This document shows positions 10,201-44,900 of a DNA stretch of 64,000 bases, in pieces. Origin of the DNA: Macrostomum lignano (lineage: Eukaryota); assembly GCA_002269645.1 (NCBI GenBank), contig NIVC01000100.1:496001-560000 (forward strand), written 5' to 3'. Below the pieces are notes generated by a model. The model saw nothing but the letters and a program-made list of their open reading frames with translations, made no database searches and was not told where the DNA came from. Every line of letters starts with the position of its first letter. Position 1 is the stretch's first letter. Made by a program: the position numbers and the translations under genes.

Positions 10201-10618
10201 GAGAATCTCCCTATGGGATCTAAATCCTCATTCCCAACTGAGAATCTCCCCATGGGATCCTAGATCCTCATTCCCAACTGAGAATCTCCCCATCGGATCC
10301 TAGATCCTCCTTCCTAACTGAGAATCTCCCCATGGGATCCTAGATCCTCATTTCCAACTGAGAATCTCCCCATGGGATCCTAGATCCTCATTCCCAACTG
10401 AGAATCTCCCCATGGGATCCTATAGATCCTCATTCCTAACTGAGAATCTCCCCATGGGATCCTAGATCCTCATTCCCAACTGAGAATCTCCCCATGGGAT
10501 CCTATAGATCCTCATTCCCAACTGAGAATCTCCCCATGGGATCCTAGATCCTCATTCCCAACTGAGAATCTCCCCATGGGATCCTAGATCCTCATTCCCA
10601 ACTGAGATTCTCCCCATG
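7205..10618. repeat. 40-bp satellite (AACTGAGAATCTCCCCATGGGATCCTAGATCCTCATTCCC)
   Basis: Tandem units with 40-bp spacing (e.g. 7693/7733). Rare variants recur ~1.66 kb apart. Confidence 0.97.
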
Positions 10619-12602: not shown

Positions 12603-12605
12603 TGG

Positions 12606-17283: not shown

Positions 17284-18027
17284 CCCACCTCTCAATTTCT
17301 CATCGCCTCTCGTCTTCTGTCCTTTCTTCCACATTCCCCTCTCTCCCCCTCCTTTCTTCTTTCAGAGTTTTTGCTAAAAATATGTTTCCAATTAAGATAG
17401 TGTCGTTTCTTGCCAAAAGTCCTATCTCCCCCCGTAGCTTTAGTCTGTTTTTCGCGCAAAAATGGACTCAATTATTTTCTTAGAAACTATGATGTTCCTG
17501 CCGCTTCTACTTCTCTCTTAGCTTCATCAAGAATTTTTAATCCATGTTGTCATGACAACGCTAAAAATGGGCACTGTCTTTCGTCTGTCCACTAGCTTTG
17601 TTCCATAGTTAAGGCGGAGCATTTCGCTGCAAGCGTGTCGCATTAAAAATTCACCTAATGACTTTTATCGCGGTTGAGTTTCCGTGAGAACTTAAATTGA
17701 GACTTCGATGCTATGTGCCCGTTTGTGTCAGCTGTCAGTCATTGACGTAAATCATTCCTCACTCTGTGTCTAATTTTAAACTAGAGAGACTTCTCTGGTC
17801 CAATCACACAGACCCGCGACTACTGCATGTGAATATTAACAGCTAATTTCGCGGGTCTCAGGACCGTCGCATCAAGAAATTTTCATGTGCGCAACAATAC
17901 TGGAGCATTGCAACATGAAATTAGCCTTGAGTCTGTACACCTTGGCCTTCTTGACTTCTCTGGCTTGTGGTGAGTCAACACAATGTCGGTTTTGTAAAAT
18001 GATATTTAAGCTTACGTGCTACACGGG

Positions 18028-20395
18028 TCTCTCCTGACATCTTCACTGCGTGTGTCCTCTGACACCCCACTGACTCTCCTGACATCTTCACTGCGTGTCT
18101 CCTCTGACACTCCACTGTCTCTCCTGACATCTTCACTGCGTGTGTCCTCTGACACCCACTGTCTCTCCTGACATCTTCACTGCGTGTGTCCTGTGACACC
18201 CCACTGACTCTCCTGACATCTTCACTGCGTGTCTCCTCTGACACTCCACTGTCTCTCCTGACATCTTCACTGCGTGTGTCCTCTGACACCCACTGTCTCT
18301 CCTGACATCTTCACTGCGTGTCTCCTCTGACACTCCACTGTCTCTCCTGACATCTTCACTGCGTGTGTCCTCTGACACCCACTGTCTCTCCTGACATCTT
18401 CACTGCGTGTGTCCTCTGACACCTCACTGACTCTCCTGACATCTTCACTGCGTGTGTCCTCTGACACCCACTGTCTCTCCTGACATCTTCACTGCGTGTG
18501 TCCTCTGACACCCCACTGACTCTCCTGACATCTTCACTGCGTGTCTCCTCTGACACTCCACTGTCTCTCCTGACATCTTCACTGCGTGTGTCCTCTGACA
18601 CCCCACTGACTCTCCTGACATCTTCACTGCGTGTGTCCTCTGACACCCCACTGTCTCTCCTGACATCTTCACTGCGTGTGTCCTCTGACACCCACTGTCT
18701 CTCCTGACATCTTCACTGCGTGTGTCCTCTGACACCCCACTGACTCTCCTGACATCTTCACTGCGTGTCTCCTCTGACACTCCACTGTCTCTCCTGACAT
18801 CTTCACTGCGTGTGTCCTCTGACACCCCACTGACTCTCCTGACATCTTCACTGCGTGTGTCCTCTGACACCCCACTGTCTCTCCTGACATCTTCACTGCG
18901 TGTGTCCTCTGACACCCACTGTCTCTCCTGACATCTTCACTGCGTGTGTCCTCTGACACCCCACTGACTCTCCTGACATCTTCACTGCGTGTCTCCTCTG
19001 ACACTCCACTGTCTCTCCTGACATCTTCACTGCGTGTGTCCTCTGACACCCCACTGTCTCTCCTGACATCTTCACTGCGTGTGTCCTCTGACACCCCTTT
19101 GTCTCTCCTGACATCTCCACTGCGTGTGTCCTCTGACACCCCACTGACTCTCCTGACATCTTCACTGCGTGTGTCCTCTGACACCCCACTGTCTCTCCTG
19201 ATATCTCCACTGCGTGTGTCCTCTGACACCCCACTGACTCTCCTGACATCTTCACTGCGTGTGTCCTCTGACACCCTACTGTCTCTCCTGACATCTCCAC
19301 TGCGTGTGTCCTCTGACACCCCACTGTCTCTCCTGATATCTCCACTGCGTGTGTCCTCTGACACCCCACTGTCTCTCCTGACATCTTCACTGCGTGTGTC
19401 CTCTGACACCCCACTGTCTCTCCTGATATCTCCACTGCGTGTGTCCTCTGACACCCCACTGTCTCTCCTGACATCTTCACTGCGTGTGTCCTCTGACACC
19501 CTACTGTCTCTCCTGACATCTCCACTGCGTGTGTCCTCTGACACCCTACTGTCTCTCCTGATATCTTCACTGCGTGTGTCCTCTGACACCCCACTGTCTC
19601 TCCTGACATCGTCACTGCGTGTGTCCTCTGACACCCTACTGTCTCTCCTGACATCTTCACTGCGTGTGTCCTCTGACACCCCACTGACTCTCCTGACATC
19701 TTCACTGCGTGTGTCCTCTGACACCCACTGTCTCTCCTGACATCTTCACTGCGTGTGTCCTCTGACACCCTACTGTCTCTCCTGATATCTTCACTGCGTG
19801 TGTCCTCTGACACCCCACTGACTCTCCTGACATCTTCACTGCGTGTGTCCTCTGACACCCCACTGTCTCTCCTGACATCTTCACTGCGTGTGTCCTCTGA
19901 CACCCCACTGTCTCTCCTGATATCTTCACTGCGTGTGTCCTCTGACACCCCACTGTCTCTCCTGATATCTTCACTGCGTGTGTCCTCTGACACCCCACTG
20001 TCTCTCCTGACATCTTCACTGCGTGTGTCCTCTGACACCCCATTCTCTCTCCTGACATCGTCACTGCGTGTGTCCTCTGACACCCCACTCTCTCTCCTGA
20101 CATTTTCACTGCGTGTGTCCTCTGACACCCCATTCTCTCTCCTGACATCGTCACTGCGTGTGTCCTCTGACACCCCACTCTCTCTCCTGACATCTTCACT
20201 GCGTGTGTCCTCTGACACCCCATTCTTTCTCCTGACATCGTCACTGCGTGTGTCCTCTGACACCCCACTCTCTCTCCTGACATCGTCACTGCGTGTGTCC
20301 TCTGACACCCCACTCTCTCTCCTGACATCGTCACTGCGTTTATCCTCTGACACCCCACTGACTCTCCTGACATCTTCACTGCGTTTGTGCTCTCC
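18028..20395. repeat. 45-bp intronic minisatellite (TCTCTCCTGACATCTTCACTGCGTGTGTCCTCTGACACCCCACTG), ~52 units, intron 1 of left gene
   Basis: 45-bp spacing (19801/19846); lies between donor 17970 and acceptor 20412. Confidence 0.96.
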
Positions 20396-21030: not shown

Positions 21031-22670
21031 CCCCTCCAGTCAGCTACACTATTCAATTTCAAAGTAAGCACTTCCTGATTTAGCATGTACGCGTTAGCCA
21101 ATGAGGCACCCAGAAAAAACAAAAAGTGCAGTTATGATTGTGTTATATTTTACAGATACAAACACAGGACCTTCCGGCTCGGTGCAGCAGCTGACAATCA
21201 ACGCCACCGGCTGCTACCGCATCGAGGCCTCCGGAGCATGGGGCGGAAACAACACCAGCAGCGGCAAGCTGGGGGGCAAAGGCGCTCTGGCCAAGGGCAA
21301 CTTCAGCCTGACTCTGGACACAACTCTGAGCATCCTTGTTGGCCAGGCGGGTGCAGAGCCGAATGACCACTACGGCGGTGCTGGCGGAGGCGGCGGCAGC
21401 TTCGTGTTCATCAACAGCAGCCCGAAGCAGCTCCTGGTAGCTGCTGGCGGCGGCGGCGGAGCTTCATAGTACTCTGATGGTGAGCTGTGAACATGGATTT
21501 TCCAAGGACCACTAGCACTACATCAGTACGCTATATTCAAAGATCGTGTAGGCCAATTTCCGCCCAGCTTATTAGTAGCTATTTTATCCTAATTCATAGA
21601 CTTGTCTAAATAATTAGCTCGTGTATATAGGCTATGTTTAGCGATATTTATCTTCATATTGCTGTCAACTAGCCTTTAGACACCTATAAGTTTTTAAGCC
21701 AGGCCAGGTAACCTTCACTAACTCAGATCAAATGCAATCAAAGATTTTGTAATGAAAAAATAGGGTTTTTCTTATCTCTGCAGTGTATTTTTTGACGAAA
21801 TTGGCCTAAAAAATACAAGATCTTTGAGTGTAGCGTCCTGATATACCGCTAGTGGTCCTTGGGAGTTTTTTGTAACAGGTATGCTGGGACCAGAAGGATG
21901 CTATATACATTGTGAGTCGCTTTGTATAGGTTTCCGTCTTCAGGTGTTGGGATTCTCGGGGAGTGCATGCATGTTTGCTGTTTGCTGTCTCACCCCAGGA
22001 CGCCCCGGCCAGTCCGGCGTGAACGGCACCGACGCTACCCAATCGAGTTCCGGCAAGCCGAGCTTCGATCACGGCGGTGCCAACGGCGCTGCTGGCTACA
22101 ATTCTCCCCAGGAAGTGGACAGCAAGGCTACTCACGGCGGCTGCGGCTCAGGCTGGAATGGCAAGGCTGTCTTAGTCAGGCGTGGCAACTATGACGGCGA
22201 ACGAGGCGGCTGGATTTTCGACAGCACCGGAGGCTCTGGCGGAGCTGGCGGCACCTCTAATGGCGGCGGAAGCGGCGCGGGCACCGGAGGCTTCGGCGGA
22301 GGCGGCGGCGGTGGCTGCGGTGGCGGTGGCAACAAGTGCGACAGCGCCTGCTCCGGCCCGTGCAGAGCGGCTGGCGGAGGCGGCGGCGGCTACAGCGGCG
22401 GCGGAGCCGGCGTCAACGAAGGTCAAGCTGGCGGTGGCGGCGGCTCCTACTGCTCCGGTGTCGGCTGCTCCAGCGTCACAGGCGGCTCGGTGAACTCGGC
22501 GAATCCACACGGTCTGGTGACGGTGACCGGGCCTGGCGGCGGCACCTGCTGACGGCTGAAGCTGAGCACTCGGGATCTACGGAGAATAACGGAATGACGA
22601 GAGTATGTTTATGAGTTTAAACTGAAAACTATAAACAAAATAGTCGGTCACTAGCAGTAGTGAGTAGAAT

Positions 22671-27216: not shown

Positions 27217-29244
27217 ATGGACGGCTTGCGCATTCGCAGGTCACCGCATACGGGCTCTCCCAGCTGGCTAGCGAAGCTCAACACTGGCTACAATCAGAGG
27301 GCCAGACAGGGCTTCGTGTACTGGTTCACCGGACGGCCGAAACCGACTCAATGTGAGTAAAATGATAGCTGATGATGCTTGGTTTGTTGTCAAGGGGATC
27401 TGGTTAGACGCATTTGGTTCCCTTTGTGAGATCCTTAGGAGCAGCCTTACTTCCCTTACAAGATCCTTTGATGTTGCCTTAATTCCCCTACAAGATCATT
27501 TGGTGTTGCCTTAATTCCCCTACATGATCCTTTGGTGTTGTCTTAATTCCATTATAAGACCCTTTGATGTTGCCTTAATTCCCCTACAAGATTCTTTGAT
27601 GTGCTTTAATTCCCCTACAATTGATCCTTGGATTTTGCCTTAATTCCCCTACAAGATCCTTTGATGTGCCTTAATTCCCCTACAAGATCCTTTGATGTGC
27701 CTTAATTCCCCTACCAGATCATTTGGTGTTGCCTTAATTCCCCTACATGATCCTTTGGTGTTGTCTTAATTCCCCTACAAGATCCTTTGATGGTGCCTTA
27801 ATTCCCCTACAATTGATCCTTTGATGTGCCCTAATTCTCCTACAAGATCCTTTGATGTTGCCTTAATTCCCTTATAAGATTCTTTGATGTGTCTTAATTC
27901 CCCTACCAGATCATTTGGTGTTGCCTTAATTCCCCTACAAGATCATTTGGTGTTGCCTTAATTCCCCTACATGATCCTTTGGTGTTGTCTTAATTCCATT
28001 ATAAGATCCTTTGATGTGCCTTAATTCCCCTACAAGATCCTTTGATGTGCCTTAATTCCCCTACAAGATCCTTTGATGGTGCCTTAATTCCCCTACAAGA
28101 TCCTTTGATGTGCCTTAATTCCCCTACAAGATCCTTTGATGTTGCCTTAATTCCCTTATAAGATTCTTTGATGTGCTTTAATTCCCCTACAATTGATCCT
28201 TGGATTTTGCCTTAATTCCCCTACAAGATCCTTTGATGTGCCTTAATTCCCCTACCAGATCATTTGGTGTTGCCTTAATTCCCCTACATGATCCTTTGGT
28301 GTTGTCTTAATTCCCCTACAAGATCCTTTGATGGTGCCTTAATTCCCCTACAATTGATCCTTTGATGTGCCCTAATTCTCCTACAAGATCCTTTGATGGT
28401 GCCTTAATTCCCCTACAAGATCCTTTGATGGTGCCTTAATTCTCCTACAAGATCCTTTGATGTTGCCTTAATTCCCTTATAAGATTCTTTGATGTGTCTT
28501 AATTCCCCTACCAGATCATTTGGTGTTGCCTTAATTCCCCTACATGATCCTTTGATGTGTCTAAATTCCCCTACAAGATCCTTTGATGTTGCCTTAATTC
28601 CCTTATAAGATTCTTTGATGTGCTTTAATTCCCCTACAATTGATCCTTGGATTTTGCCTTAATTCCCCTACAAGATCCTTTGATGTGCTTTAATTCCCCT
28701 ACAAGATCCTTTGATGTGCCTTAATTCCCCTACAAGATCCTTTGATGCGCCCTAATTCCCCTACAAGATCCTTTGATGTTGCCTTAATTCCCCTACAAGA
28801 TCATTTGATGTGCTTTAATTCCCCTACAAGATCCTTTGATGTGCCTTAATTCCCCTACAAGATCCTTTGATGTTGCCTTAATTCCCCTACAAGATCCTTT
28901 GATGTGCTTTAATTCCCCTACAAGATCCTTTGATGTGCCTTAATTCCCCTACAAGATCCTTTGATGTTGCCTTAATTCCCCTACAAGATCCTTTGATGGT
29001 GCCTTAATTCCCCTACAAGATCCTTTGATGGTGCCTTAATTCCCCTACAAGATCCTTTGATGTTGCCTTAATTCTTCTACAAGATCATTTGATGCGCCCT
29101 AATTCCCCTACAATTGATCCTTTGATTTTGCCTTAATTCCTCTACAAGATCCTTTGGTGTTGCCTCACCATCCCCGCAGTCGGTCGGTACAGCACCGGAG
29201 CGAAGCACATGCAGTACGGTCTCGGCATGGCGCCAAGAAGTTAA
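27217..29244 (+). CDS. Candidate small spliced ORF (27217-27352 + 29180-29244; 66 aa MDGLRIRR...GLGMAPRS), possibly the 3' part of a larger or disrupted gene starting at 26359
   Basis: GC-rich exon-like islands with T|gtgagt donor and cccgcag| acceptor in compatible phase. No recognised homology. Confidence 0.3.
27440..29165. repeat. 31/32-bp minisatellite (CCCCTACAAGATCCTTTGATGTGCCTTAATT)
   Basis: 31-bp spacing (28681/28712). Confidence 0.95.
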
Positions 29245-29910: not shown

Positions 29911-30185
29911 TGTTTGGGAGGTAGATTATTAACTTATTGATTTTCTATTCATTGCATGATTTAATGTACTGCTTTATTCAGTTCGCTATGTACGCTGGTC
30001 TAGACCAGGCCCATTTCACCCACCCCCACCGCTGGCTGATATTCTGGCTGACTGCAAATAAATATATCATCGAGAGGGCTTGCGGGCCCTGTACGGTTTA
30101 CGGTTTTCGTTTTGTTAGCGTCTCGCTTGAGCCTCAGCTCCAAAATAGTTTGGCGGACCATCGGTCTGTTCATTTCTACAGTACA
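29911..30185 (+). repeat. 5' LTR of BEL/Pao element
   Basis: Starts TG after the TSD, ends CTACAGTACA, immediately followed by the PBS. Confidence 0.8.
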
Positions 30186-30188
30186 TTT

Positions 30189-30206
30189 TGGTAGCAGAGC
30201 GTGGTT
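30189..30206 (+). promoter_or_regulatory. Primer-binding site TGGTAGCAGAGCGTGGTT, complementary to an initiator-tRNA-Met-type 3' end
   Basis: 3 nt after the 5' LTR; complement ends ...CTCTGCTACCA as in eukaryotic tRNA-iMet. Confidence 0.75.
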
Positions 30207-30397
30207 GGACAAGCCTAACTTACCGCTGACGTGGCAAGCAATAGAATCCTACTGTGAAACAAAGGACCAGGATGGACAGTGACGACGCCAATGAGCAGCA
30301 GCAGCAGGAAGCTCAAGACGATGCCTGCGCCCTACGTTTGGAGAAGCTGCGCTTCGAGAAAACCCGAAAAAAGCAGAGTTCACTGTGGTAGCGTGGG

Positions 30398-30691
30398 GCA
30401 CGCGAAGGCGTATTCAGCATGCCAGTGAAGTATGAGACAGACTAGGCCCATGGGCTAACGTCTGCGATGCTTCACGCCTGCCCCTATCTTCAGCAGGTCA
30501 AGGCTGGTGGGAGGTCTGCACCCTCTACATGTATTTGCCTCTGGCAGCCGCAGACCCCCCCCCCCACGCTGTCTCGCAAGTCGACCCAGGGTACTCGTCC
30601 CCGCGTGTGTTCAAGGCAGTCCCTAGGGCTGCTGGACAGACTGGGCTCCGGCGCTGGCGACCCTATCCAGTGGCTTCGGCCGAATTTGGGT
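30398..30691 (+). ncRNA. Candidate HDV-like self-cleaving ribozyme at the LINE 5' end
   Basis: P1 GCACGCG(30398-404)/CGCGTGT(30602-608) with G1-U wobble; P2 ACCCA(30584-588)/TGGGT(30687-691); P3 GGG/CCC around L3 TACTCGT(30592-598); GT after P1; J4/2 CGAA(30681-684). Folded by hand. Confidence 0.7.
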
Positions 30692-30923
30692 ATGCGGGTC
30701 TGGCTCGCCAACCTGCAGGCCGTGGTACTGCTCAACGTAATCTCTAATGCCTAAGGTGTTGACCGTGCCGATGGGCTGGAAGGCCGGGGAGTAGTCCGGT
30801 CGCAAGCGGTCCCCCTCCTGGTGTCGGGCCAGCCTTGAGGGTGCTATTGGCCTACTGCCCGGTCAGGTGGAGCGGCCGGGTGGGTACCGCGCCCCTTTGA
30901 GGGTAGCCCACCAACCTTCTATC

Positions 30924-32432
30924 ATGGCCTTCGAGCCGTCTATGGATAAACAAGCTATTTCTAGGGACGGGGACCCTTCTAAACCCCAACCTCAGTCCGA
31001 AGGACCGGCCGGCCCTGCTGGCAGATCCCAACCGACTGATTCAACTGTGGCAAAGGAAGGACCGGCTGGCTCTGCTGGCAGATCCGACCAGAGCTACCAA
31101 ACTCAAAATACCCAAAGACCTGCCAGCTCCGCTGGTGGATCTAAGGGAACCGCGAGCTCTGAGCCTAAAGGACCGGCCAAATCTGGCAGATCCGACGAAG
31201 CTCAGCGGGCTCGGCTTGAGCGCAAACGCGCTAAACAACGCGCCAAAAGGCAGGCCAAGAAGGGAGCTGCGGGGGCCAAAGCGGCGGCGTCCACCATGGA
31301 TGCTGAAGCGACTGGCGTCCCAAGGCAACCAGACGGGCCGGCCGGTGGAAGCTCCGGTAGTTCAGCGGCGGCGCTCCCTGGAGATGCTGCTGCGGCTGCT
31401 GAGGCCGAAACCACGGCGCAACAAATGGCCACTGCCAACAAGGAGGTTCCTTCGGGAGCTACCTTTGCGGCGAAGGCCAAGGCCAAAATCCCGGGAGTGA
31501 TCATCCAAGGTCACGACCAGGACTGGACCTTGGGCCAGATCAGCTTCAAAAAGTGTGGAGTGCTGTTGACTCCTATCTGATTGAGCTGACTGTCGAGAAG
31601 GGAATCTCCATCGGCATTGAGCGGATGGTGCTGCGAAGCACATTCGTTCTTATTGCTCCTAGCAGCGAGGAGGACGCTCGGCAGCTGCTCCAGCGGCTAC
31701 CGACGGTCTCCTTGGATGCTGACCTTGGCGGAGCTCTTTTTCTTCGCGAGGGCCAGCGTCCAAAGACGATACCCTATGTGGTTTTCGTCCCTGCTAAGAG
31801 CACCGCAGCTGGACCAGACGTTATTCGCCGGGTCCTACTGCGTCTGAACCCCGACCTCCCTGCTAGTGGACTGGTGTATCACCGCAAAGTCCGCAGGGGG
31901 GAGACGGGCAACTCAATTGTCCTCGGCCTTTCCAGCACTTGGGCGAGTCGGTACCCTAATGGATCCTCTTTCCAGTTGGGTGCCCTCAAGCTCAAGATGC
32001 GCCGAGGAAAGTCTGCCAAAGGGAAGGCTTCTGCCAACCCCGGCATCTCCGGCAAGAGCGGGGCGCAGTCTAAGGCCCAAGGAAAGGCGCAAGCCGATCC
32101 CAAAGCCAAAGCTGCGTCTCGCCCCTCTGCTAGCAGCAGTTCGGCGACCGCGGTAACGGCTCCGGCCAAGCCCCGGGAACCAAACCTGCCAGTCGGAGAA
32201 GGAGTTGAGGACGAGGCCGGGTCTTCGGAATCCGAGCTCTCCTCGGCCACCCTGGTGGGGTCTGAAGGTAAAGATGCAGGTGAGGAAGCTTCCTCCATCC
32301 TGTCATCGGAGCCTGAGGACTCTGCTGGGGGGGGGGGTGGGTGAGGAGGCCATGGACGTCGACCAACTCCCATCTCCCAGTCAAGCCCCAGCGGCCTGGG
32401 ACGAGGACGATCTGTTGTCCAAGTCTCCTTGA
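30924..32432 (+). CDS. LINE ORF1 (gag-like nucleic-acid-binding protein) with two homopolymer frameshifts
   Basis: Joins ORFs 30867..31580, 31553..32344 and the end of 32205..32432. Breaks fall in A5 (31548-31552) and G11 (32327-32337). Basic stretch and an RRVLLRLNPDL motif; no zinc knuckle seen. Confidence 0.7.
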
Positions 32433-32471
32433 TGGCCCTGGGCTCTAGCCAGAAATTGCATTTAATACAGT

Positions 32472-35400
32472 ATGACTAAGCTCCACGCTGCCAAAGGAGC
32501 GACATTCTGTCTGCAAATTAATTTACAGCATTGCGTATCTGCGTCAGTAAATCTGATGAAGATTGCTGAGCTGTACAGGCCAGGCCTCATCCTGATCCAG
32601 GAACCCTGGATGCGCAACGGTAAGTTGCCCAACATTCCCTCTGGCTACTCTGATTTTTATGTGTGTGGCCCGGGGAACAGTCGCCCTAGAGCGGCTATCC
32701 TCGCTGCTAGCCATCTCCAGGCTTGGCTGAGGACTGATCTCTCTGATGGAGACCTTTGCGTCATCCAATCTAATCATTTCTCTCCGCGTACGTGTCTTGT
32801 TGCCTCGGTTTATATCCCAGGCGACAGAGACCCTGCTCCTGAGAGTTTACTGCGCCTCGCGCAGTACTGCGAGTCCCAGAACGCTGAGCTGTGCTTAGGG
32901 GGCGACCTCAACGCGCACCACAAGCACTGGGGCAGCAAAGATACCAACACTAGAGGAGAGGAGCTTCTGGCCCTCATCTCTAACACAAACCTCATGCTCT
33001 GCAACCGCGGCAGCACTCCTACCTTTAATAATGGCAGATGGACCGAGGTCCTCGACGCCACACTCGTTACCCCAAGACTCTTTGACAGAGTTGAGGAGTG
33101 GAGAGTCTGGTCTGAGGAGCCCTCCCTGTCTGACCACTGCTTTATCGCCTTTAACATCGCGGACACTAAAACCCAGTCTCCGATCACTTGGAGACGCAAT
33201 ATCCGCAACACTGATTGGGCGGCCTACAAGGCTGCCCTTGATCTGCACCTGCAGGAACTCACGGACTTACGTCCGATTGAGACCTGCGAGGATGTGGATC
33301 ATATGGCTGAGACGCTGACAGGTTGCATTATTGAAGCCTACGAAGCGGCTTGTCCTGCTCGCGCCTACAAAGGCAAGACCTCGGCGCCGTGGTGGAACCC
33401 GGAGCTGGGGAAACTCAGGCGGAAGGCCAAAAGCCTTCATCGCCGTGCCATGAAGACCGGAAACCCGGAGGACATGGAGCTTTTCCGGCAAGCCTCCCGC
33501 AATTTCAAATCTGAAGTGCGCAAGGCCAAGGAATGTAAGTGGCGCCAATTCTGCAATGAATTGGATCAAGACAGACCTACTTCTAGGCTTGTCAAGGCCC
33601 ATACAATGGACAAAATGTCCAAATTAGCCATGATCAAAAAAGATGATGGCTCTCTTACTAAAGACCCTGAAGAAGTGCTTCAGCATATGCTCAGCACATT
33701 CTTCCCGAGGGTACCTACTGCTAGACCGGAGCCCAACCATTCGATGGATGGAGCCACCCTAGCGGCGGGCATTGTCACTGAAGACCAAATCGCTCGTGCG
33801 GTCAGAACCTTCAAACCCTTCAAATCTCCTGGACCTGATGGTATCTACCCTGTTCTCCTTCGTGAAGCAGCCAAGATACCCTCGTTCCTGAGACTCACCC
33901 GCAATCTTATGCGGGCCTCTATCCAGCTGGGATACGTTCCCAAATGCTGGACTGAAGCTCGGGTAGTCTTTATTCCCAAACCTGGGAAGGGTGACTACCA
34001 AAGCGTCAAGGCCTTCCGGCCTATTAGCTTAACGTCAGCAATGCTTAAGCTCACTGAGAGGCTTATTCTCTGGCGGCTGCTGTCCTGCGAGCTGACAGCG
34101 ATGCCCCTCAGCAATAATCAGCACGCCTTCCGTACCGGGAGGTCGACTGACAGCGCCTTGCATGCGATTGTCGAGAAGATTGAAAGGGCGGTACTGGGTG
34201 ACGGTTACGCTCTGGCTCTCTTTCTTGACATTGTTGGCGCCTTCGACAACGTTATCTTTGAAGCGTTTCAGAGGTCCCTTCAAAATCGCAAAGCTCATGC
34301 TACCCTCATACGGTGGATCATGTACATGATCTCCAACCGTACGGTCACTGCCCAACTTCTTGGGCAAACTGCCTCCACCAGAGTCTGTAAGGGTGGACCC
34401 CAAGGCGGAGTCCTCACCCCGACGCTCTGGAACCTGGTCATGGACGCTCTTTTGAGTGACTCCCGACCCGACCCCGTCTTCAAAGTCGGGTATGCTGATG
34501 ACGTCACGGCCATTGTGGCAGGACCGTCTCCCAGCACGCTCAGGGATCTGATGCAGAGCTTTATCCGCAAAGCAGAATCCTGGGCCAATGACAATGGTCT
34601 GGAACTCTCTGAGCCCAAAACCGTTGCCATTATGTTTACCAGCAGACTACGCTGGAACATACGTCCTTTGCAGCTCTACGGCAGAGATATTGCCTTCGCG
34701 CACCAGACCAGATGTCTCGGGGTCATACTTGACCACCGGCTCAACTGGTCCTTCCACGTGAAAGCAAAAGCCAAGCGCGCCTCAGCCATCCTGGCCCAGC
34801 TCCGACGAGCACTTGGCACTTCTTGGGGTCTATCCCCAAAGCGGCTTTGGTGGATCTATACTTCCGTAGTTAGACCTGCCATTACGTACGCCTCTGTTGT
34901 CTGGGTTAGCGCTGCCCAGGTCAAAAGCCATGCAGACCTGCTCAACACGATCCAAGGCAGAGCGTGTAGGCTCATCTGCAACGCCACCAGGTCCACGCCC
35001 TTTGCTGGCATGGGGGCCTTCCTTAATCTTCCGCCTCTTGACCTCTTCATCAGGGGTGAGGCGGCTAGAACGACGCGGCGTCTAATTGATGCCGGCGTCA
35101 AATTCATTTACATGAGAGCACCTGCTAAGCGGAACCTTGTCCCGCATAGCGATCTGTGCCTCAACTTTCTCAACGAGTGTCAGGCCAATCGCGTCTTCAC
35201 CGATGGCATTGCCTCAACGCTCAACCTGAGACAGCGCTACTCCGTAGCTATCGACTCGCGCGATAACATCAATGACCAATGGAACCCTGGTGAGCTTCAT
35301 TGCTACACCGACGGTTCTAAGCAGTCAGCCAACACCGGCTTTGGTGTTGGAATCTTTCTGAACGGGAGGGTCATCGCTACCCACGCTCAATACACTGGGG

Positions 35401-36212
35401 TCAACTCCAGTGTTTTCCAAAATGAAGTTCTGGCCATCAGCTCCTGCACTGCAGAGCTTCTCGCCACTGGCGTTACTGGTAAGAACATCATTTTCCATTC
35501 GGACAGCCAAGCTGCCTTGCACGCCATCAGTGGCTGCAGCACCAACTCTGCTACAGTCCTCGACTGTATCAAACTCCTCAACATGTTGGGTTCCGCCAAC
35601 AAAATTACCCTTAAGTGGGTTCCGGGGCATGTGAGGATCCGAGGAAATGAGTTGGCTGACACCCTTGCAAAAGTTGGTGCCTCCGGCTCCTCTCTCGGCC
35701 CCGAACCTCTTGTCCCGATTCCTAGCTGTGTCATCGACTCGCGCATCAAAGCGTGGATCAGGACTCAGCACCGCTCGACTTGGGCGAACCGCACGAACTG
35801 CAGGCAATCCAGAGGCGCTGTCCCTCAGCCCTCTCACCAGCTTCGGAAGCTCCTCTTGCGCCTCTCGCGCAGAGACATCCGGGCTGCCACCATGACCCTC
35901 TCTGGTCACGGCTGCTTCTCCAGGCACCAGTACCTGCAGGGCAACGCCACCAACGCCACCTGTAGCTTCTGCAACTCAGGTGACGAAACCGCTGAGCATT
36001 TTGTCAGCATCTGTCCCGCCTTCACGCGGGCCAGACTCACTTACCTCGGGCCACACACATCTATTACTGAAGCGTGCAAACCCGAAAACTTTAATCAGCT
36101 CATGCGCTACCTTCGGGCCACCCGCAGGGCTGAACTCTCCTTTCCAGAGAGCACCATAGCTGCTGGCGACACTGGGGGACCTCCCTGGGCGGCGCCAACC
36201 CTCCGTCCATAG
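32472..36212 (+). CDS. LINE ORF2 polyprotein, 1246 aa, uninterrupted: AP endonuclease, reverse transcriptase, RNase H, C-terminal CCHC
   Basis: QINLQH, LIQEPW, GDLNAHH..WG and SDH (APE); PGPDG, FRPISL, LDIVGAFD, PQGGVLTP and YADD (RT); YTDGSK, SDSQAAL and KWVPGH..GNELAD (RNase H); CSFC..ETAEHFVSIC. Confidence 0.96.
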   Translation: MTKLHAAKGATFCLQINLQHCVSASVNLMKIAELYRPGLILIQEPWMRNGKLPNIPSGYSDFYVCGPGNSRPRAAILAASHLQAWLRTDLSDGDLCVIQSNHFSPRTCLVASVYIPGDRDPAPESLLRLAQYCESQNAELCLGGDLNAHHKHWGSKDTNTRGEELLALISNTNLMLCNRGSTPTFNNGRWTEVLDATLVTPRLFDRVEEWRVWSEEPSLSDHCFIAFNIADTKTQSPITWRRNIRNTDWAAYKAALDLHLQELTDLRPIETCEDVDHMAETLTGCIIEAYEAACPARAYKGKTSAPWWNPELGKLRRKAKSLHRRAMKTGNPEDMELFRQASRNFKSEVRKAKECKWRQFCNELDQDRPTSRLVKAHTMDKMSKLAMIKKDDGSLTKDPEEVLQHMLSTFFPRVPTARPEPNHSMDGATLAAGIVTEDQIARAVRTFKPFKSPGPDGIYPVLLREAAKIPSFLRLTRNLMRASIQLGYVPKCWTEARVVFIPKPGKGDYQSVKAFRPISLTSAMLKLTERLILWRLLSCELTAMPLSNNQHAFRTGRSTDSALHAIVEKIERAVLGDGYALALFLDIVGAFDNVIFEAFQRSLQNRKAHATLIRWIMYMISNRTVTAQLLGQTASTRVCKGGPQGGVLTPTLWNLVMDALLSDSRPDPVFKVGYADDVTAIVAGPSPSTLRDLMQSFIRKAESWANDNGLELSEPKTVAIMFTSRLRWNIRPLQLYGRDIAFAHQTRCLGVILDHRLNWSFHVKAKAKRASAILAQLRRALGTSWGLSPKRLWWIYTSVVRPAITYASVVWVSAAQVKSHADLLNTIQGRACRLICNATRSTPFAGMGAFLNLPPLDLFIRGEAARTTRRLIDAGVKFIYMRAPAKRNLVPHSDLCLNFLNECQANRVFTDGIASTLNLRQRYSVAIDSRDNINDQWNPGELHCYTDGSKQSANTGFGVGIFLNGRVIATHAQYTGVNSSVFQNEVLAISSCTAELLATGVTGKNIIFHSDSQAALHAISGCSTNSATVLDCIKLLNMLGSANKITLKWVPGHVRIRGNELADTLAKVGASGSSLGPEPLVPIPSCVIDSRIKAWIRTQHRSTWANRTNCRQSRGAVPQPSHQLRKLLLRLSRRDIRAATMTLSGHGCFSRHQYLQGNATNATCSFCNSGDETAEHFVSICPAFTRARLTYLGPHTSITEACKPENFNQLMRYLRATRRAELSFPESTIAAGDTGGPPWAAPTLRP

Positions 36213-36487
36213 CGACGCGTCGGCCGTTCAGGGACTAGCGGAATGGGCGCCCGCGCCTTCCCGCTGTGTCCCCTTCGGGACAGCCCTGCAGCTAAGTCAA
36301 GAAGACTAAGTCAAGTGGTAGCGTGGGTCTGCTCAGTTGCTCCGCTCAGTGTAATGTACAGTGCAGGTGTACACCTGCACGCGCGCGTGTGATTGGCTGA
36401 CGCTTTGTCAGACAACCTTTATTGTTGGCCAGCTATATTAAATACAAGCTCTCTGCCTTTGGGGGGTCTTACCCCCGAAGTGGAGGT

Positions 36488-39400
36488 TTCACAGTTGCAA
36501 AAACAAGCTGTCTTGGCTGCTAAAGACGCGCGCCTCTGATGACGAAGTGCAAGTTGCCTGTGACGCTCTGTCAGACCTGCAGGACCTGGTCAGCGCCATC
36601 CAGGAAGAACTGCATCAAGGCTACGCCGACGCCAAGGACAACGAGAGGCGACAGCGCCTACGGGACGAATTGGAGGAGACGGAGCGCGACTATCAAGCTG
36701 CCATGCAGCGCGTCGAAAGTTCCAGAAACCGGGGATTGCAGCGCGCCCAAGAAGCTCCTGCCGCGAGTTCAAGCGGTGAGAACGCTGCGGGTGACCAAGA
36801 AGAAGCAGCTGGTGAGTTAGACAAACTTTCTGGCAGTGCTGCGTCCAGCAAAGGATCCAACCCGAAGGAGCTTTCAAAGGATTTGTGGAAGATGCTGAAG
36901 CGTGTTGAAATCCCAACGTTTAGTGGAGAAAAGCAGAAGTATGAAAACTGGAAGGCAGCCTTTGTTGCGTGCATCGACAGCGCCCCTGCAACACCAGAAT
37001 TCAAGTTGCTGCAGCTTAGGCAGACCTTAGCGGTGAAGCTTTGAAGGTTATAGAACATCTAGGACACTCCGCTGCTGCATATGAGGCTGCAAAAGAGAGA
37101 CTAGAGAGAGAATTTGGTGGGCAGCGTAGGCAACTTGCTCTGCACTTGGAAGAGCTGGACAGCTTCCCGATCGTACGGAATGGAAACGCCAAGGATCTGA
37201 AAAGCTTTGCTAATCTACTGGATGTGGCTGTCGTTAACCTTGAGGATGCGGGTAAAGAGGCAGAGCTTCAAGATGGAATGTTGTATGTGAGACTGCAGAA
37301 AAAGTTGCCTGAGCAGATGGTTACCAGCTACCGGAGGTGGATTTTCGAGCAGCGGAAGTCGGAGAGTGTTAGAAATCTGAGAATGGGTGCTGCAAGAAGC
37401 GGAGTTTCAGACTGAAGCGTCAGAGATTGTGCAGGGCGTTGCCACCATGCAGCAGGAGCGTCAAAAGCGAGAGCAGCGACCAAAGACTTTCGTTACTACG
37501 GACAGTGACAAGAAGGTACAGCGAAAGATTTGCATTGTTTGTCAAGGTGATCACGAGCTGTGGTCCTGCAGTGAGTTCAAGGAGCTTCTGGTGGAAAAAC
37601 GCTGGGACGCGGCGCAGAGCTCGAAGTGTTGTTTCCGGTGCTTGGGCCAAGGACATCTTGGCAGCCAATTTCGGCGCGGTCGTCGGTGCGGCATCAACAG
37701 CTGCACAAAGTTCCATCATCGCCTGCTTCATGCAGAAAAAGTGTTGGCCAAGTCTGGTGAAGCGAAGCAGACTGCATCCAAGGACGTTAAATCCGCTTCC
37801 AGTTCAGGAAAGACTGGACCGGTGACGCTTCTGTCAGCTGGTGAAACGGCAATCTCGTTACGAACGGTACCTGTAGTCCTACGGAACGGGTCCCGGAAGC
37901 TGAAGGTGAATGCCTTGCTCGACGATGCCAGTACCAGGAGCTACGTCAACATCGGGATAGCAGAAGCGCTTGGAGTGCATGGAGTGCTCGAAAAGGTGAA
38001 AGTCGGAGTCATCAACGGCCAAACAGAGACCTTCATGACAGCCCCAGTCTGCTTTAGCTTGGAAAGTCTGGATGGTCAGAACAGCTCAATGATCGTCGCC
38101 TTCACCGCTGATCACGTGACCGGGTCCCTCAAAGGCGTCGACTGGCACGAAGAAGCGCAGCAGTGGCCTCATCTGAGAAATGTGCCGTTTCCGAAGCTGT
38201 GTGAGCCTGCAGTAGTGGACTTGCTGATTGGTGCTGATCACCCGGATCTTCACGTTTCCTTCAAGGAAATCGTCGGACAGCCGCTGGAGCCAAAGGCGCG
38301 CCTGACTCCCCTGGGTTGGACGTGCATCGGTCGCACAGAGCAGGACAATTCTGAGATGCAGAACGCCCATTTTGCTGCCACTTTCTTCAGCTGCGATTCC
38401 GAATCTGGTCAGGTGGCTAAGATCCTGCGGCAGTTTTGGGAGATCGAGAACGTCTCAGAAGGTGCCAATCGAAGTCCGCTGACCGCCGATAAGGAGAGAG
38501 CCGTCCAGCAAGCCAAGTCGTCGCTGAAGTACATGAAGGGCCGTTACCAGATCGGGATTCCATGGAAAAAGGATTGGCTGGCTCCAGCAGGCACTTTCTC
38601 AATGGCCTTGAAGCGACTAAAGAACACCGAACAGCGGCTGATTAAGGATGTGCACGTCTGCAGGCAGTATCAGGAGATCCTTGAAAAGTATGAACAGCAA
38701 GGGTATATCCGAAAAGTGTCGCAAGCTGAGACTGAATGCCACTGTTTCCTGCCGCACTTCCCAGTGCTGCGGCTAGACAAGGCTACAACAAAAGTGCGGA
38801 TAGTCTTTGATGCATCGGCTGCCAGATTGAACGAGCAGATCCTCCAGGGCCCCAAACTGCAGAGGGATTTGGTTGACGTGCTGCTTCGGTTCCGCCGACA
38901 ACCGATTGCGATCGCATGCGACGTATCTCCAGATCGAGATGGACCCGAAGGACAGGCCGCTGCACAGTTTCCTTTGGCGGGACGCCGATCCTTCAAAGCA
39001 ACCGGATGTCTACGAGTTCAACAGAGTGGTGTTCGGCGTCAACAGCTCTCCTTTCTTGGCGCAGTTGGTTACCCGTTGCCATGCTGAAAAATTAAAAGGT
39101 GAGCTTCCAGAGGTGGCCCAAACAGTACTGCACTCTACCTATATGGATGACAGCCTGGACTCTGCGCCCACCGAGGCAGCCGCCTGCAGGCTGTGCGATC
39201 AACTCAGTGAGCTCTTGAGGCGCGCCGGCATGCCGCCTGAAGACCGTGCAGCAGAAGTTACCTTGGACAGCAAAGAACTACCGAGTGCCAAGACGCTGCG
39301 TATCACGTGGCAGAGTGAGCAGGACGAATTTACTTTTAAAGACGAAAACCAGTCGTATCATGTGACCACAAGAAGGAGTCTGCTGACAAAGCTAGCGAGC

Positions 39401-40290
39401 GTCTTTGATCCACTTGGACTGATCTCCCCGTTTGTCGTGCAGGTGAAGATTCTGATGCAGGTGAAGATTCTGATGCAGGTGAAGATTCTGATGCAGGTGA
39501 AGATTCTGATGCAGGTGAAGATTCTGATGCAGGTGAAGATTCTGATGCAGGTGAAGATTCTGATGCAGGTGAAGATTCTGATGCAGGTGAAGATTCTGAT
39601 GCAGGTGAAGATTCTGATGCAGGTGAAGATTCTGATGCAGGTGAAGATTCTGATGCAGGTGAAGATTCTGATGCAGGTGAAGATTCTGATGCAGGTGAAG
39701 ATTCTGATGCAGGTGAAGATTCTGATGCAGGTGAAGATTCTGATGCAGGTGAAGATTCTGATGCAGGAGCTTTGGCAGTCAATCTGGTCAATTCTGAGGG
39801 AGACGGAAGTCATCGATGAGGAGCTGCTAAGCGCGTTTGCTGGAGCGGAGGCACTTCTGAATTCAAGGCCGCTGACGTACCAGACGGCGCATCCGGGTGA
39901 TGATGTGCCGCTGACGCCAAATCACTTCCTCATCCGGCAAGTCGGCGGGAAGTTTGCACCGGAGGTCGACGCTGCCATCGCCCGCAGTCCTTCAAGAAGA
40001 TGGCGTCACGTTCAGCAGCTGGTGTCGCAGATCTGGCGCCGGTGGTGGCGCGAGTGGCTGCCGGGACTCGCACCGCGGAGCAAGTGGCGCCGCGAGCTGC
40101 CTGACCGGCAACCTGGAGATGTGGCGCTGCTGGTGAGCCCCGACTCGCCTCGGGGTCACTGGCCGCTGGCTCGCGTGCTGGACGTCATGCGCGGTCCAGA
40201 CGGGCACGTGAGAGTCGCCACAATCAGAGTTGGTGAATCGCACAATGACGAGACCAATAACAAAGTTGTGTCCAATATCTGTAGGTTAGT
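36488..40290 (+). pseudogene. BEL/Pao gag-pol remnant (frameshifted, internally deleted)
   Basis: KRVEIPTFSGEKQKYENWKAAF (Pao gag); three Cys/His knuckles; ALLDDAS protease; FLPHFPVLRLDKATTKVRIVFDAS and YMDD RT; [13 protein letters not shown] RNase H start; jump to AEALLNSRPLT/LTPNHFL..RWRHVQ..WRRW integrase C-terminus; RPITKLCP in a shifted frame near 40270. Frameshifts near 37040, 37385 and 38925. Confidence 0.92.
39443..39766 (+). repeat. 18 perfect copies of GTGAAGATTCTGATGCAG (VKILMQ) inside the Pao RNase H region
   Basis: 324 bp = 18 x 18 bp, in frame. Confidence 0.97.
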
Positions 40291-40871
40291 TTGCGAACCT
40301 TTGCTAGAGAATTAGACTTTGTCAGGTTTTGCAATTTTTCTGATGAGTTTTTCAATTTTCCTGTTTTTTGCATTGTTCGTATTGTCTTTTTTCTCTTTCC
40401 AGCTAATAGGATTCACCCTGTTTAGCAGTCATAACCCAATTTTCGTTTTCAGTGTTCAACGCGATTAACATTCATTATTTAGTTATTTATTTTCTTGCGT
40501 GAATTTTTGCTGAAGTTCATTACGGTCGTTACGGTTTATTGAATTTGTCGGCAAGTTTGTCTTTTGTGCTTTTTTTAGTTTTTTTACGAGCGATGTTGGC
40601 ATTCTTTGAGTTCTACTTATTGCTTTATTTTGTTCGCTTAGAGGTACTACAGTTTTTGCACTAGTTACGACCTTTTGATAGTCCAATGCTTACAATTATT
40701 GTTTCAGTTGCGTTTGGTGGCGGAAGTCTGCGTTCGTGTTCAATTTTGAATTTTTCTTTATAGCTGACGTACTTTTGCAAAATTTTCGATTTTCGAATAC
40801 TTTTCTAATATTCGTTTCTTTTTCATCCCGTCATCCCTCGAATAGTTTTTTGTCATTGTTATTTTTGTCAT

Positions 40872-41120
40872 ACTTATTGATTTTCTATCCATTGCATGAT
40901 TTAATGTACTGCTTTATTCAGTGTACGCTGGTCTAGCCCAGGCCCATTTCACCCACCCCCACCGCTGGCTGATATTCTGGCTGACTGCAAATAAATATAT
41001 CATCGAGAGGGCTTGCGGGCCCTGTGTACGGTTTACGGTTTTCGTTTTGTTAGCGTCTCGCTTGAGCCTCAGCTCCAAAATAGTTTGGCGGACCATCGGT
41101 CTGTTCATTTCTACAGTACA
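40872..41120 (+). repeat. 3' LTR of BEL/Pao element (5'-truncated)
   Basis: Near-identical to 29932-30185 (small indels); ends in CA followed by TSD GGGCC. Confidence 0.82.
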
Positions 41121-41988: not shown

Positions 41989-44900
41989 TCTGTAGCTGGC
42001 CCCCCTCTGTAGCTGGCCTCTGTAGCTGGCGCCCCCTCTGTAGCTGGCCTCTGTAGCTAGCGCCCCTCTGTAGCTGGCCTCTGTAGCTGGCGCCCCTCTG
42101 TAGCTGGCCTCTGTAGCTGGCGCCCCCTCTGTCCCCCTCTGTAGCTAGCGCCCCCTCTGTCCCCCTCTGTAGCTGGCACCCCTCTGTAGCTGGCGCCCCT
42201 CTGTAGCTGGCGCCCCTCTGTAGCTGGCGCCCCTCTGTAGCTGGCGTCTCCTCTGTAGCTGGCGCCCCTCTGTAGCTGGCGCCCCTCTGTAGCTGGCGCC
42301 CCTCTGTAGCTGGCGCCCCTCTGTAGCTGGCGCCCCTCTGTAGCTGGCGCCCCTCTGTAGCTGGCGCCCCTCTGTAGCTGGCGCCCCCTCTGTAGCTGGC
42401 GCCCCGCTCTGTAGCTGGCGTCCCCTCTGTAGCTGGCGCCCCGCTCTGTAGCTGGCGCCCCCTCTGTCCCCCTCTGTAGCTGGCGCCCCCTCTGTCCCCC
42501 TCTGTAGCTGGCGCCCCTCTGTAGCTGGCGTCTCCTCTGTAGCTGGCGCCCCTCTGTAGCTGGCGTCTCCTCTGTAGCTGGCGCCCCTCTGTAGCTGGCG
42601 CCCCTCTGTAGCTGGCGCCCCTCTGTAGCTGGCGCCACCTCTGTAGCTGGCGCCCCCTTTGTAGCTGGCCTCTGTAGCTGGCGCCCCCTCTGTAGCTGGC
42701 CTCTGTAGCTGGCGCCCCCTCTGTAGCTGGTGCCCCGCTCTGTAGCTGGCGCCCCTCTGTAGCTGGCGTCTCCTCTGTAGCTGGCGCCCCTCTGTAGCTG
42801 GTGCCCCTCTGTAGCTGGCGCCCCTCTGTAGCTGGCGCCCCTCTGTAGCTGGCGCCCCTCTGTAGCTGGCGCCCCTCTGTAGCTGGCGCCCCCTCTGTAG
42901 CTGGCCTCTGTAGCTGGCGCCCCCTCTGTAGCTGGCGCCCCCCTCTGTAGCTGGCGTCTCCTCTGTAGCTGGCGCCCCTCTGTAGCTGGCGTCTCCTCTG
43001 TAGCTGGCGCCCCTCTGTAGCTGGCGTCTCCTCTGTAGCTGGCGCCCCTCTGTAGCTGGCGCCCCTCTGTAGCTGGCGCCCCTCTGTAGCTGGCGCCACC
43101 TCTGTAGCTGGCGCCCCCTCTGTAGCTGGCGCCCCCTTTGTAGCTGGCCTCTGTAGCTGGCGCCCCCTCTGTAGCTGGCGCCCCCTCTGTAGCTGGCGCC
43201 CCCTCTGTAGCTGGCCTCTGTAGCTGGCGCCCCTTCTGTAGCTGGCGCCCCTCTGTAGCTGGCGTCTCCTCTGTAGCTGGCGCCCCTCTGTAGCTGGCGC
43301 CCCCTCTGTAGCTGGCGCCCCCTCTGTAGCTGGCGCCCCCTCTGTAGCTGGTGCCCCGCTCTGTAGCTGGCGCCCCTCTGTAGCTGGCGTCTCCTCTGTA
43401 GCTGGCGCCCCTCTGTAGCTGGTGCCCCTCTGTAGCTGGCGCCCCTCTGTAGCTGGCGCCCCTCTGTAGCTGGCGCCCCCTCTGTAGCTGGCGCCCCCTC
43501 TGTAGCTGGCCTCTGTAGCTGGCGCCCCCTCTGTAGCTGGCGCCCCCCTCTGTAGCTGGCGTCTCCTCTGTAGCTGGCGCCCCTCTGTAGCTGGCGTCTC
43601 CTCTGTAGCTGGCGCCCCTCTGTAGCTGGCGCCCCTCTGTAGCTGGCGCCCCCTCTGTAGCTGGCGCCCCTCTGTAGCTGGCGCTCCGCTCTGTAGCTGG
43701 CGTCCCCTCTGTAGCTGGCGCCCCCTCTGTAGCTGGCGCCCCCCTCTGTAGCTGGCCTCTGTAGCTGGCGCCCCCTCTGTAGCTGGCGCCCCCTCTGTAG
43801 CTGGCCTCTGTAGCTGGCGCCCCCTCTGTAGCTGGCGCCCCCTCTGTAGCTGGCGTCTCCTCTGTAGCTGGCGCCCCTCTGTAGCTGGCGTCTCCTCTGT
43901 AGCTGGCGCCCCTCTGTAGCTGGCGCCCCTCTGTAGCTGGCGCCCCTCTGTAGCTGGCGCCCCCTCTGTAGCTGGCGCCCCCTCTGTAGCTGGTGCCCCG
44001 CTCTGTAGCTGGCGCCCCCTCTGTAGCTGGCCTCTGTAGCTGGCGCCCCGCTCTGTAGCTGGTGCCCCTCTGTAGCTGGCGCCCCTCTGTAGCTGGCGCC
44101 CCTCTGTAGCTGGCGCCCCCTCTGTAGCTGGCGCCCCCTCTGTAGCTGGCCTCTGTAGCTGGCGCCCCCTCTGTAGCTGGCCTCTGTAGCTGGCGCCCCC
44201 TCTGTAGCTGGCGCCCCCCTCTGTAGCTGGCGTCTCCTCTGTAGCTGGCGCCCCTCTGTAGCTGGCGCCCCCTCTGTAGCTGGCGCCCCCCTCTGTAGCT
44301 GGCGTCTCCTCTGTAGCTGGCGCCCCTCTGTAGCTGGCGTCTCCTCTGTAGCTGGCGCCCCTCTGTAGCTGGCGCCCCTCTGTAGCTGGCGCCCCTCTGT
44401 AGCTGGCGCCCCCTCTGTAGCTGGCGCCCCCTCTGTAGCTGGCGCTCCGCTCTGTAGCTGGCGTCCCCTCTGTAGCTGGCGCCCCGCTCTGTAGCTGGCG
44501 CCCCCCTCTGTAGCTGGCCTCTGTAGCTGGCGCCCCCTCTGTAGCTGGCGCCCCCTCTGTAGCTGGCGCTCCGCTCTGTAGCTGGCGTCCCCTCTGTAGC
44601 TGGCGCCCCGCTCTGTAGCTGGCGCCCCCCTCTGTAGCTGGCCTCTGTAGCTGGCGCCCCCTCTGTAGCTGGCGCCCCCCTCTGTAGCTGGCGTCTCCTC
44701 TGTAGCTGGCGCCCCTCTGTAGCTGGCGTCTCCTCTGTAGTTGGCGCCCCTCTGTAGCTGGCGCCCCTCTGTAGCTGGCGCCCCCTCTGTAGCTGGCGCT
44801 CCGCTCTTTAGCTGGCGTCCCCTCCGTAGCTGGCGCCCCGCTCTGTAGCTGGCGCCCCCCTCTGTAGCTGGCGCCCCCTCTGTCCCCCTCTGTAGCTGGC

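Follow-up and report, generated by a model that had tools for sequence, protein, structure and literature searches.

The window analysed here, a 64,000-nt stretch of the genome of the flatworm Macrostomum lignano (contig NIVC01000100.1, positions 496,001 to 560,000), contains a full-length long interspersed nuclear element (LINE), the first approximately 250 nt of which (30398-30652 of the window) are predicted to encode a self-cleaving ribozyme with the nested double-pseudoknot organization of the hepatitis delta virus (HDV)-like family, a reading to which we assign a probability of roughly 75%. In R2, RTE-type, and L1Tc/ingi LINEs, the 5' end is set by an HDV-like ribozyme, and the element in the window probably follows this known strategy, here in Platyhelminthes, by means of a predicted 5'-processing ribozyme. 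Most of the structural features of the HDV-like family that were tested are present, and the predicted structure starts exactly at the first base of the element.

Anatomy of the predicted ribozyme

The boundaries of the LINE are defined by a 13-bp target-site duplication (TSD), GTGGTAGCGTGGG, the two copies of which (Table 1) are identical at 13 of 13 positions and directly adjoin both ends of the element. Because the TSD is perfect and the bases adjoining its copies on the outside differ, G30398 and A36314 are unambiguously the first and last bases of the LINE, as established for one genomic copy with both flanks. The same first base had been assigned in an initial annotation, prepared from the letters of the window, which proposed an HDV-like ribozyme at this position. 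Two related elements, obtained from open reading frame 2 (ORF2) and ORF1 searches in one public run (Logan ERR14788467), were used for comparison: L001 is a complete element with an ORF2 that displays 57% amino acid identity to that of the window, and L002, with an ORF1 of 32% amino acid identity, is 5'-truncated inside J1/2, the domain between helices P1 and P2. The leaders of both are homologous to that of the window. In the comparison with L001 at the nucleotide level, the leader (54-58% identity) is as conserved as ORF2 (60%) and more so than the ORF1 region (45%). Moreover, both ends of the window element agree with L001: the first base of the L001 contig is the very G that aligns with G30398, and similarity stops at ...CTAAGTCAA, in which the 3' untranslated region (UTR) of the window element terminates without poly(A).

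In the compact model proposed here, the strand order P1-J1/2-P2-P3-L3-P3'-P1'-J1/4-P4-J4/2-P2' is found in the window as well as in L001 and L002 (in L002 minus the P1 5' strand). P1 consists in the window of a G30398-U30608 wobble followed by six Watson-Crick pairs, and in L001 of G1-C194 followed by five. This helix, P3 with its loop L3, the GU dinucleotide following P1 (30609-10), and the two long hairpins within J1/2 had all been recognized in the initial annotation and are retained in the present model. J1/2 contains a conserved hairpin at approximately 30425-30475 and a second one at 30507-30567, and the ends of the domain pair with each other, yielding a closed multi-branch fold both in the window and in L001 (162 nt); RNAalifold analysis of J1/2 gave a conserved hairpin with compensatory changes as well as 8 pairs that are retained through changes on both sides. 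P2 is prolonged in all three sequences, across a small internal loop, by a 4-bp extension (GYCG/CGGC), which accounts for the conserved motifs GCAAGYCG and CGGCGC, and G30589 has a possible partner in P2 as well as in P3. At the site of the short P4 hairpin, L001 and L002 carry differing hairpins, each with an AA bulge. On this sequence evidence, the compact core is predicted to end at 30645, or at 30652 when the P2 extension is included, with C30637 as the candidate catalytic residue.

Covariation, descriptor matches and alternative readings

Comparison of the window with L001 and L002 revealed compensatory changes of five base pairs: P1 and P1.1 contribute two each, and P2 contributes one. 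The P1 pairs are G-U, C-G, A-U, C-G, G-C, C-G, and G-C in the window and G-C, C-G, C-G, U-A, G-C, and C-G in L001 (strands GCCUGC/GCAGGC), the 5' strand being missing in L002, and the compensatory changes between window and L001 are A-U to C-G and C-G to U-A. P1.1 is formed by C-G and A-U in the window, by U-A and C-G in L001, and by C-G and a U.U apposition in L002, which corresponds to changes of C-G to U-A and of A-U to C-G between window and L001. For P2, which reads CCCAG/CUGGG in the window, CUCAGA/UCUGAG in L001, and CCUCAGA/UCUGAGG in L002, the compensatory change is found at C30586-G30644, which is U-A in both relatives; the closing A-U pair of this helix is absent from both strands in the window. 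Invariant in the three sequences are P3 (GGG/CCC), the U....GU pattern of L3 (UACUCGU, UCUCCGU, and UUCCCGU in window, L001, and L002, respectively), and the C at position -4 from P2, with which the 4 nt of J4/2 before the P2 3' strand begin (CAGA, CUGC, and CUGA in the same order). Moreover, with the core strands blocked, unconstrained minimum free energy (MFE) folds of L001 and L002 produced the compact P2, the GYCG/CGGC extension, and P4.

The hdv descriptor of the Lupták laboratory was taken from the supplement of PMC4870747 (Figs S11/S13); as published, it specifies P1 as GNNNNN*/...Y, a P2 of at least 6, P3 as NNN with Watson-Crick pairing, L3 as TYYHCG*Y, J1/4 as RN, and J4/2 as CNRA*, and it was run with J1/2 relaxed to at most 250 nt, one L3 mismatch allowed, and a P2 of at least 4 bp. 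In this relaxed form, 30398 was the sole match in a scan of both strands of the window (128 kb with 33,732 G positions), apart from a shadow match at 30417 that uses the same core, and the solution is the compact one, with a P2 3' strand at 30642-45 that is preceded by CAGAC. A home-made strict descriptor missed the locus, and a home-made loose descriptor (J1/2 up to 300 nt) returned several chance loci per 128 kb. The motif alone therefore proves little, and the test was anchored at the TSD-defined base 1, where the relaxed descriptor matched 4 of 50,000 dinucleotide-shuffled versions of the 5' UTR and a looser descriptor gave a chance probability of 2e-4 to 6e-4.

Several observations weigh against a functional ribozyme. 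The covariation draws on two or three sequences only, or two in the case of P1, since L002 is without its 5' end. An exact fit to the published descriptor is seen in none of the three sequences: J1/2 spans 160-180 nt versus at most 50 nt in the descriptor, L3 of the window mismatches TYYHCGY at position 2, an A that pairs with U30610 in P1.1, and J4/2 of L001 carries a C where CNRA has its constrained A (one mismatch). L3 of L001 and of L002 fits TYYHCGY exactly, J4/2 of the window and of L002 fits CNRA, and the 50-nt bound on J1/2 is, judged by active R2 ribozymes with a J1/2 of 23 to more than 700 nt (PMC3774820), a search convenience and not a limit of the family. Rfam cmscan searches of the window, the 91-nt core, and L001, at the gathering score and at E<=10, gave no match to an HDV family (HDV, CPEB3, drz) and returned unrelated weak ones only, a miss that is expected for a structure with pseudoknots, a long insert, and little conservation of sequence. 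P2 of the window measures 5 bp when G30589 is counted in it instead of in P3, and 4 bp otherwise, compared to 6 bp in L001 and 7 bp in L002, and the MFE fold allows a G30609-C30637 pairing that competes with the active fold. In a Leishmania example, a 3-bp P2 resulted in very low activity (PMC4035085), and by analogy the window copy may be a weak cleaver; its ORF1 is split over two frames, and the copy may be inactive or non-autonomous. Finally, the distant relatives L005-L007 (ORF2 identity of 34-36%) displayed neither a GGG-N7-CCC core nor a convincing descriptor match. A weak HDV-like candidate was noted in one of them, L006 (ORF2 identity of 36%), at 171-355, with P1 GGCGGG/CCUGCU (two G-U pairs), P3 CGA/UCG, L3 UCCUGACC, and CUAC preceding a 5-bp P2.

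Many of these observations could be accommodated if the leader were a conserved structured 5' UTR that has never cleaved or no longer does so, its HDV-like appearance reflecting partial mimicry or a decayed ribozyme, and if the helix between positions 1-7 and 205-211 of the element together with its neighbouring stems served an internal promoter in the DNA, protein binding, RNA stability, or translation. The missing Rfam match, the departure of every sequence from the descriptor at some point, the weak P2 of the window, the absence of the constrained J4/2 A in L001, the split ORF1, and the conservation of the whole 5' UTR beyond the core all fit such a leader. This alternative is nevertheless unlikely: the covarying pairs are specific to the pseudoknot, P1.1 connecting L3 with the two bases after P1 and P2 crossing P1, and their covariation counts against a non-cleaving leader, since a simple nested fold could do without these pairs. 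In addition, all three sequences retain the U...CGU pattern of L3 and the C at -4, and base 1 of the element coincides with base 1 of P1 in the window, as given by the TSD, as well as in L001, as given by the contig start.

Considerably less probable still is the version drawn in the initial annotation, in which the same P1, P3, and L3 are combined with a 70-nt branched P4 (30611-30680), a J4/2 of CGAAUU with C30681 as the catalytic residue, and a P2 formed by ACCCA (30584-88) and UGGGU (30687-91). The complementarity of the two P2 strands exists, the letters CGAA are present at 30681-84 and resemble J4/2 of HDV and CPEB3, and P2 of the compact model is also short in the window copy. However, no distal P2 is found in L001 or L002, the P2 5' strand CCUCAGA of which has one complement only, directly after the short P4, and in the consensus fold that RNAalifold gives for all three sequences, the partner of GGGU (30688-91) is a nearby ACCC (30660-63). 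When the three sequences are aligned, both relatives have a U at the position of C30681, and this C lies within a GGC-UUCG-GCC hairpin (30672-81) that the initial annotation had itself pointed out. The two U that follow CGAA break CNRA*, so that the branched P4, C30681, and the P2 3' strand at 30687-91 do not fit the descriptor, which returns the compact solution only, and these parts are not conserved in the relatives either; the constrained fold of the window has a free energy of -45.7 kcal/mol versus -49.8 for the compact model. The original proposal of an HDV-like ribozyme defining the LINE 5' end is supported by the P1 anchored by the TSD, the match at 30398 to the relaxed published descriptor, and the compensatory changes of P1, P1.1, and the compact P2 in the two relatives; its P4, J4/2, catalytic C, and P2 3' strand are not supported. 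The C30681U control proposed along with it would test the wrong residue, since the candidate catalytic residue is C30637, and this correction matters for the design of cleavage assays.

Chance resemblance within a GC-rich, highly structured leader, for which the several matches per 128 kb of loose HDV descriptors with a long J1/2 could be taken to speak, is very improbable, since the anchored probability is ~1e-4, no other locus in the window matches the published descriptor, and the structure is conserved with compensatory changes in independent elements.

Two ORF1 profile searches returned only L001, L002, and M. lignano UniRef models with no contig attached, and L003 and L004 are without a 5' UTR. 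The core pattern matched 97 metagenome loci, none of which was homologous by BLAST, and these were rejected as chance matches at that database size; a 23-base J1/2 pattern had no matches in genome-contig and viral-contig collections.

Proposed processing, remaining leader and genomic surroundings

In the proposed mechanism, the LINE would be co-transcribed within a longer RNA from any upstream promoter, for which the 5' long terminal repeat (LTR) of a Pao-type retrotransposon is the candidate here. The initial annotation had placed a Pao LTR about 200 bp upstream, and the LTR is found in the same orientation at a distance of 212 nt; we infer read-through from it. In the transcript the double pseudoknot would fold, the structured J1/2 probably holding P1 and P2 together, and C30637 would act as the general acid/base cytosine in scission 5' of G30398, a catalytic role deduced from the anatomy and from knowledge of the family. 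The product would be a LINE RNA with a 5'-OH and with its 5' end exactly at base 1, so that full-length copies made by target-primed reverse transcription would start at G1; such a cDNA start agrees with the TSD as well as with the position at which the L001 contig starts. By analogy with what has been published on R2 and RTE ribozymes, one may speculate that the conserved rest of the 5' UTR supports cap-independent translation.

This part of the 5' UTR (30653-30923), conserved in the window, L001, and L002, displays 58% nucleotide identity to L001, versus 45% for the ORF1 region. The segment that the initial annotation had assigned to P4, J4/2, and P2 forms a conserved local ACCC/GGGU stem, which is followed by a covarying hairpin at 30695-30709 (GCGGG/CUCGC, CCGGG/CCCGG, and CACGG/CCGUG in window, L001, and L002, respectively) and by the conserved blocks CCGGGGAGTAGTCCGG (30784-99), TTGGCCTACTGCC (30847-59), and GGGTGGGTACC (30878-88); the domain may be a translation or packaging signal. 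A bolder and doubtful extension is that the leader of ~530 nt would be a composite and conserved RNA machine common to a group of Macrostomum LINE families, in which an HDV-like ribozyme with an unusually large multi-branched J1/2 'clamp' and a two-segment P2 is combined with a 30653-30923 domain that recruits ribosomes to the uncapped 5'-OH product, and sense nesting in other transposons would be the route to transcription of a promoter-less element.

The ORF1 region of the window copy consists of two overlapping frames (30924-31580 and 31553-32344), in contrast to the single ORF1 of 508-525 amino acids in L001, which could reflect a frameshift mutation or genuine overlapping ORFs. Its fragments are 98-99% identical to Macrostomum lignano UniRef proteins, and the ORF1s of more distant relatives match Pfam DUF4780; an exact database look-up of the window ORF2 returned no record. 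The 3' UTR (36213-36314 in the window and 5849-5966 in L001) is conserved at 69% identity without poly(A); both elements terminate in GCAGCTAAGTCAA, and the window copy repeats this terminal motif (...CTAAGTCAAGAAGACTAAGTCAA). BLAST searches within the window detected neither further copies of the LINE nor an empty-site copy of its Pao target.

Table 1. Coordinates of the LINE, the compact ribozyme model, and the host retrotransposon in the window
Feature	Position	Strand	Basis or remark
5' TSD copy GTGGTAGCGTGGG	30385-30397	+	same 13-mer at 36315-36327
3' TSD copy	36315-36327	+	same 13-mer as 30385-30397
Full-length LINE, 5917 bp	30398-36314	+	TSD; Pfam; ends supported by homology to L001
LINE 5' UTR	30398-30923	+	precedes ORF1 region
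P1 5' strand GCACGCG; predicted cleavage 5' of G30398	30398-30404	+	pairs with 30602-30608, 7 bp, G1-U wobble
J1/2 peripheral domain, ~175 nt, structured	30405-30579	+	MFE -65 kcal/mol
P2 extension 5' strand GUCG	30580-30583	+	within conserved GCAAGYCG; pairs with CGGC 30649-52
P2 5' strand CCCAG	30585-30589	+	pairs with CTGGG 30641-45; homologous to CUCAG/CUGAG of L001, L002
P3 GGG/CCC (30589-91/30599-601) closing L3 UACUCGU (30592-98)	30589-30601	+	GGG-N7-CCC invariant in 3/3 sequences
P1 3' strand CGCGUGU	30602-30608	+	pairs with 30398-30404
J1/4 GU	30609-30610	+	P1.1 with C30594 and A30593 of L3; pairs C-G, A-U
P4 short hairpin: 3 bp, AG bulge, 7 bp, loop CUA	30611-30635	+	MFE fold
J4/2 CAGA, C30637 candidate catalytic cytosine	30637-30640	+	C at -4 from P2 3' strand in 3/3 sequences
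P2 3' strand CUGGG	30641-30645	+	MAFFT aligns with UCUGAG of L001 and L002
P2 extension 3' strand CGGC	30649-30652	+	within conserved CGGCGC; pairs with GUCG 30580-83
Remaining 5' UTR, outside ribozyme core	30653-30923	+	RNAalifold of three sequences
LINE ORF1 region, split over two overlapping frames	30924-32344	+	ORF list
LINE ORF2: endonuclease, reverse transcriptase, RNase H	32472-36212	+	Pfam Exo_endo_phos, RVT_1, RNase_H
Pao-type LTR retrotransposon, 254-bp LTRs	29932-41120		LTR pair and internal ORF domains
Pao-type 5' LTR, possible read-through transcription source	29932-30185	+	95.7% identical to 40872-41120

The LINE is nested in sense orientation in the Pao-type element, the internal ORFs of which match Peptidase_A17, RVT_1, and DUF5641 (38873-40315). 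The leader ORF of this host element, which starts at 30262, hits a stop inside the TSD, and its pol region contains a perfect (100% match) 18-nt tandem repeat, TGCAGGTGAAGATTCTGA, at 39438-39767 (18.3 copies), the unit of which preserves the reading frame (6 codons). Satellite and minisatellite arrays occupy more than half of the window (1-6597, 7199-10619, 12605-13678, 18027-20393, 27444-29165, 41989-53018, 55447-55906, and others), with units that include 31-nt, 40-nt, 45-nt (inverted copy at 55447-55906), and 32-nt repeats; an 11-kb array of the 17-nt unit TCTGTAGCTGGCGCCCC begins 870 bp past the Pao 3' LTR. Finally, a glycine-rich exon-like segment of 325 bp is present as an inverted duplicate of 91% identity, at 21164-21488 on the plus strand and at ~53856-54180 on the minus strand, the latter copy being followed by an (AGTC)n run, and both copies are false matches of the loose HDV descriptor (L3 'TGTTGGCC').

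Comparison with known HDV-like ribozymes

Literature searches returned no report of such a ribozyme in flatworms or in this apurinic/apyrimidinic endonuclease (APE)-reverse transcriptase (RT)-RNase H lineage with a DUF4780-like ORF1. If active, the ribozyme would extend the LINE 5'-processing strategy to Platyhelminthes and explain precise full-length copies of a LINE without an obvious promoter; it would also be a naturally occurring case in which a large J1/2 clamp with covariation is combined with an extended P2, and could provide a descriptor seed for further copies that are missed by Rfam models.

The predicted ribozyme shares with those of R2 its place at the 5' end of a non-LTR element, where it would release the element from a co-transcript, as well as a P1 of 6-7 bp, a very long J1/2, a variable P4, a conserved P3/L3/P1.1 core, a catalytic C (here a candidate), and a constrained A in J4/2. 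R2 ribozymes have a J1/2 of 23 to more than 700 nt, a P1 of 6-7 bp, a P2 of at least 5 bp, and a highly variable P4 (Eickbush & Eickbush; PMC3774820). The dimensions found in the window lie within the range of proven LINE ribozymes, P2 reaching 5 bp when G30589 is counted in it. In contrast, R2 encodes a single ORF with a restriction-like endonuclease, inserts specifically into 28S rDNA, and frequently builds P1 with 28S sequence from upstream, whereas the LINE described here has two ORFs (APE, RT, RNase H), is inserted in an LTR element, and has a P1 that starts at its own first base. No sequence similarity to R2 ribozymes was detected.

A counterpart in position is the Pr77 ribozyme of the L1Tc/ingi elements of trypanosomatids (L1TcRz), which likewise occupies the first nucleotides of an APE-RT-RNase H LINE and cleaves 5' of +1, as is predicted here (PMC3185411, PMC4035085). 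L1TcRz is compact (77 nt) and also serves as an internal promoter, whereas the structure in the window extends over ~250 nt with a structured J1/2 of 175 nt.

The predicted ribozyme resembles the drz-Agam-2 type in having a J1/2 helix that brings P1 and P2 together, in its location at a retrotransposon 5' end, and in a possible role in translation. Together with further large HDV-like ribozymes from RTE/Baggins-type elements of insects, drz-Agam-2 was reportedly described by Ruminski et al. (2011). Unlike in this type, J1/2 in the window is larger and multi-branched, P2 is interrupted and prolonged by GYCG/CGGC, and the host belongs to another phylum and the element to another LINE lineage. 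Structured J1/2 domains speed up cleavage (PMC4908430).

Finally, the CPEB3 and HDV genomic ribozymes display the same helix order, an L3 of the type U-N-C-N-C-G-U, a GU after P1, and a C four bases before P2. L3 of CPEB3 is UUCACGU. The same L3 occurs in sea-urchin CPEB3-like sequences (PMC4870747). Unlike the predicted ribozyme of the window, with its long J1/2 and J4/2 of CAGA, both CPEB3 and HDV have a J1/2 of a few nucleotides and a J4/2 of CGAA, and neither of them constitutes a transposon end, CPEB3 being intronic and HDV viral.

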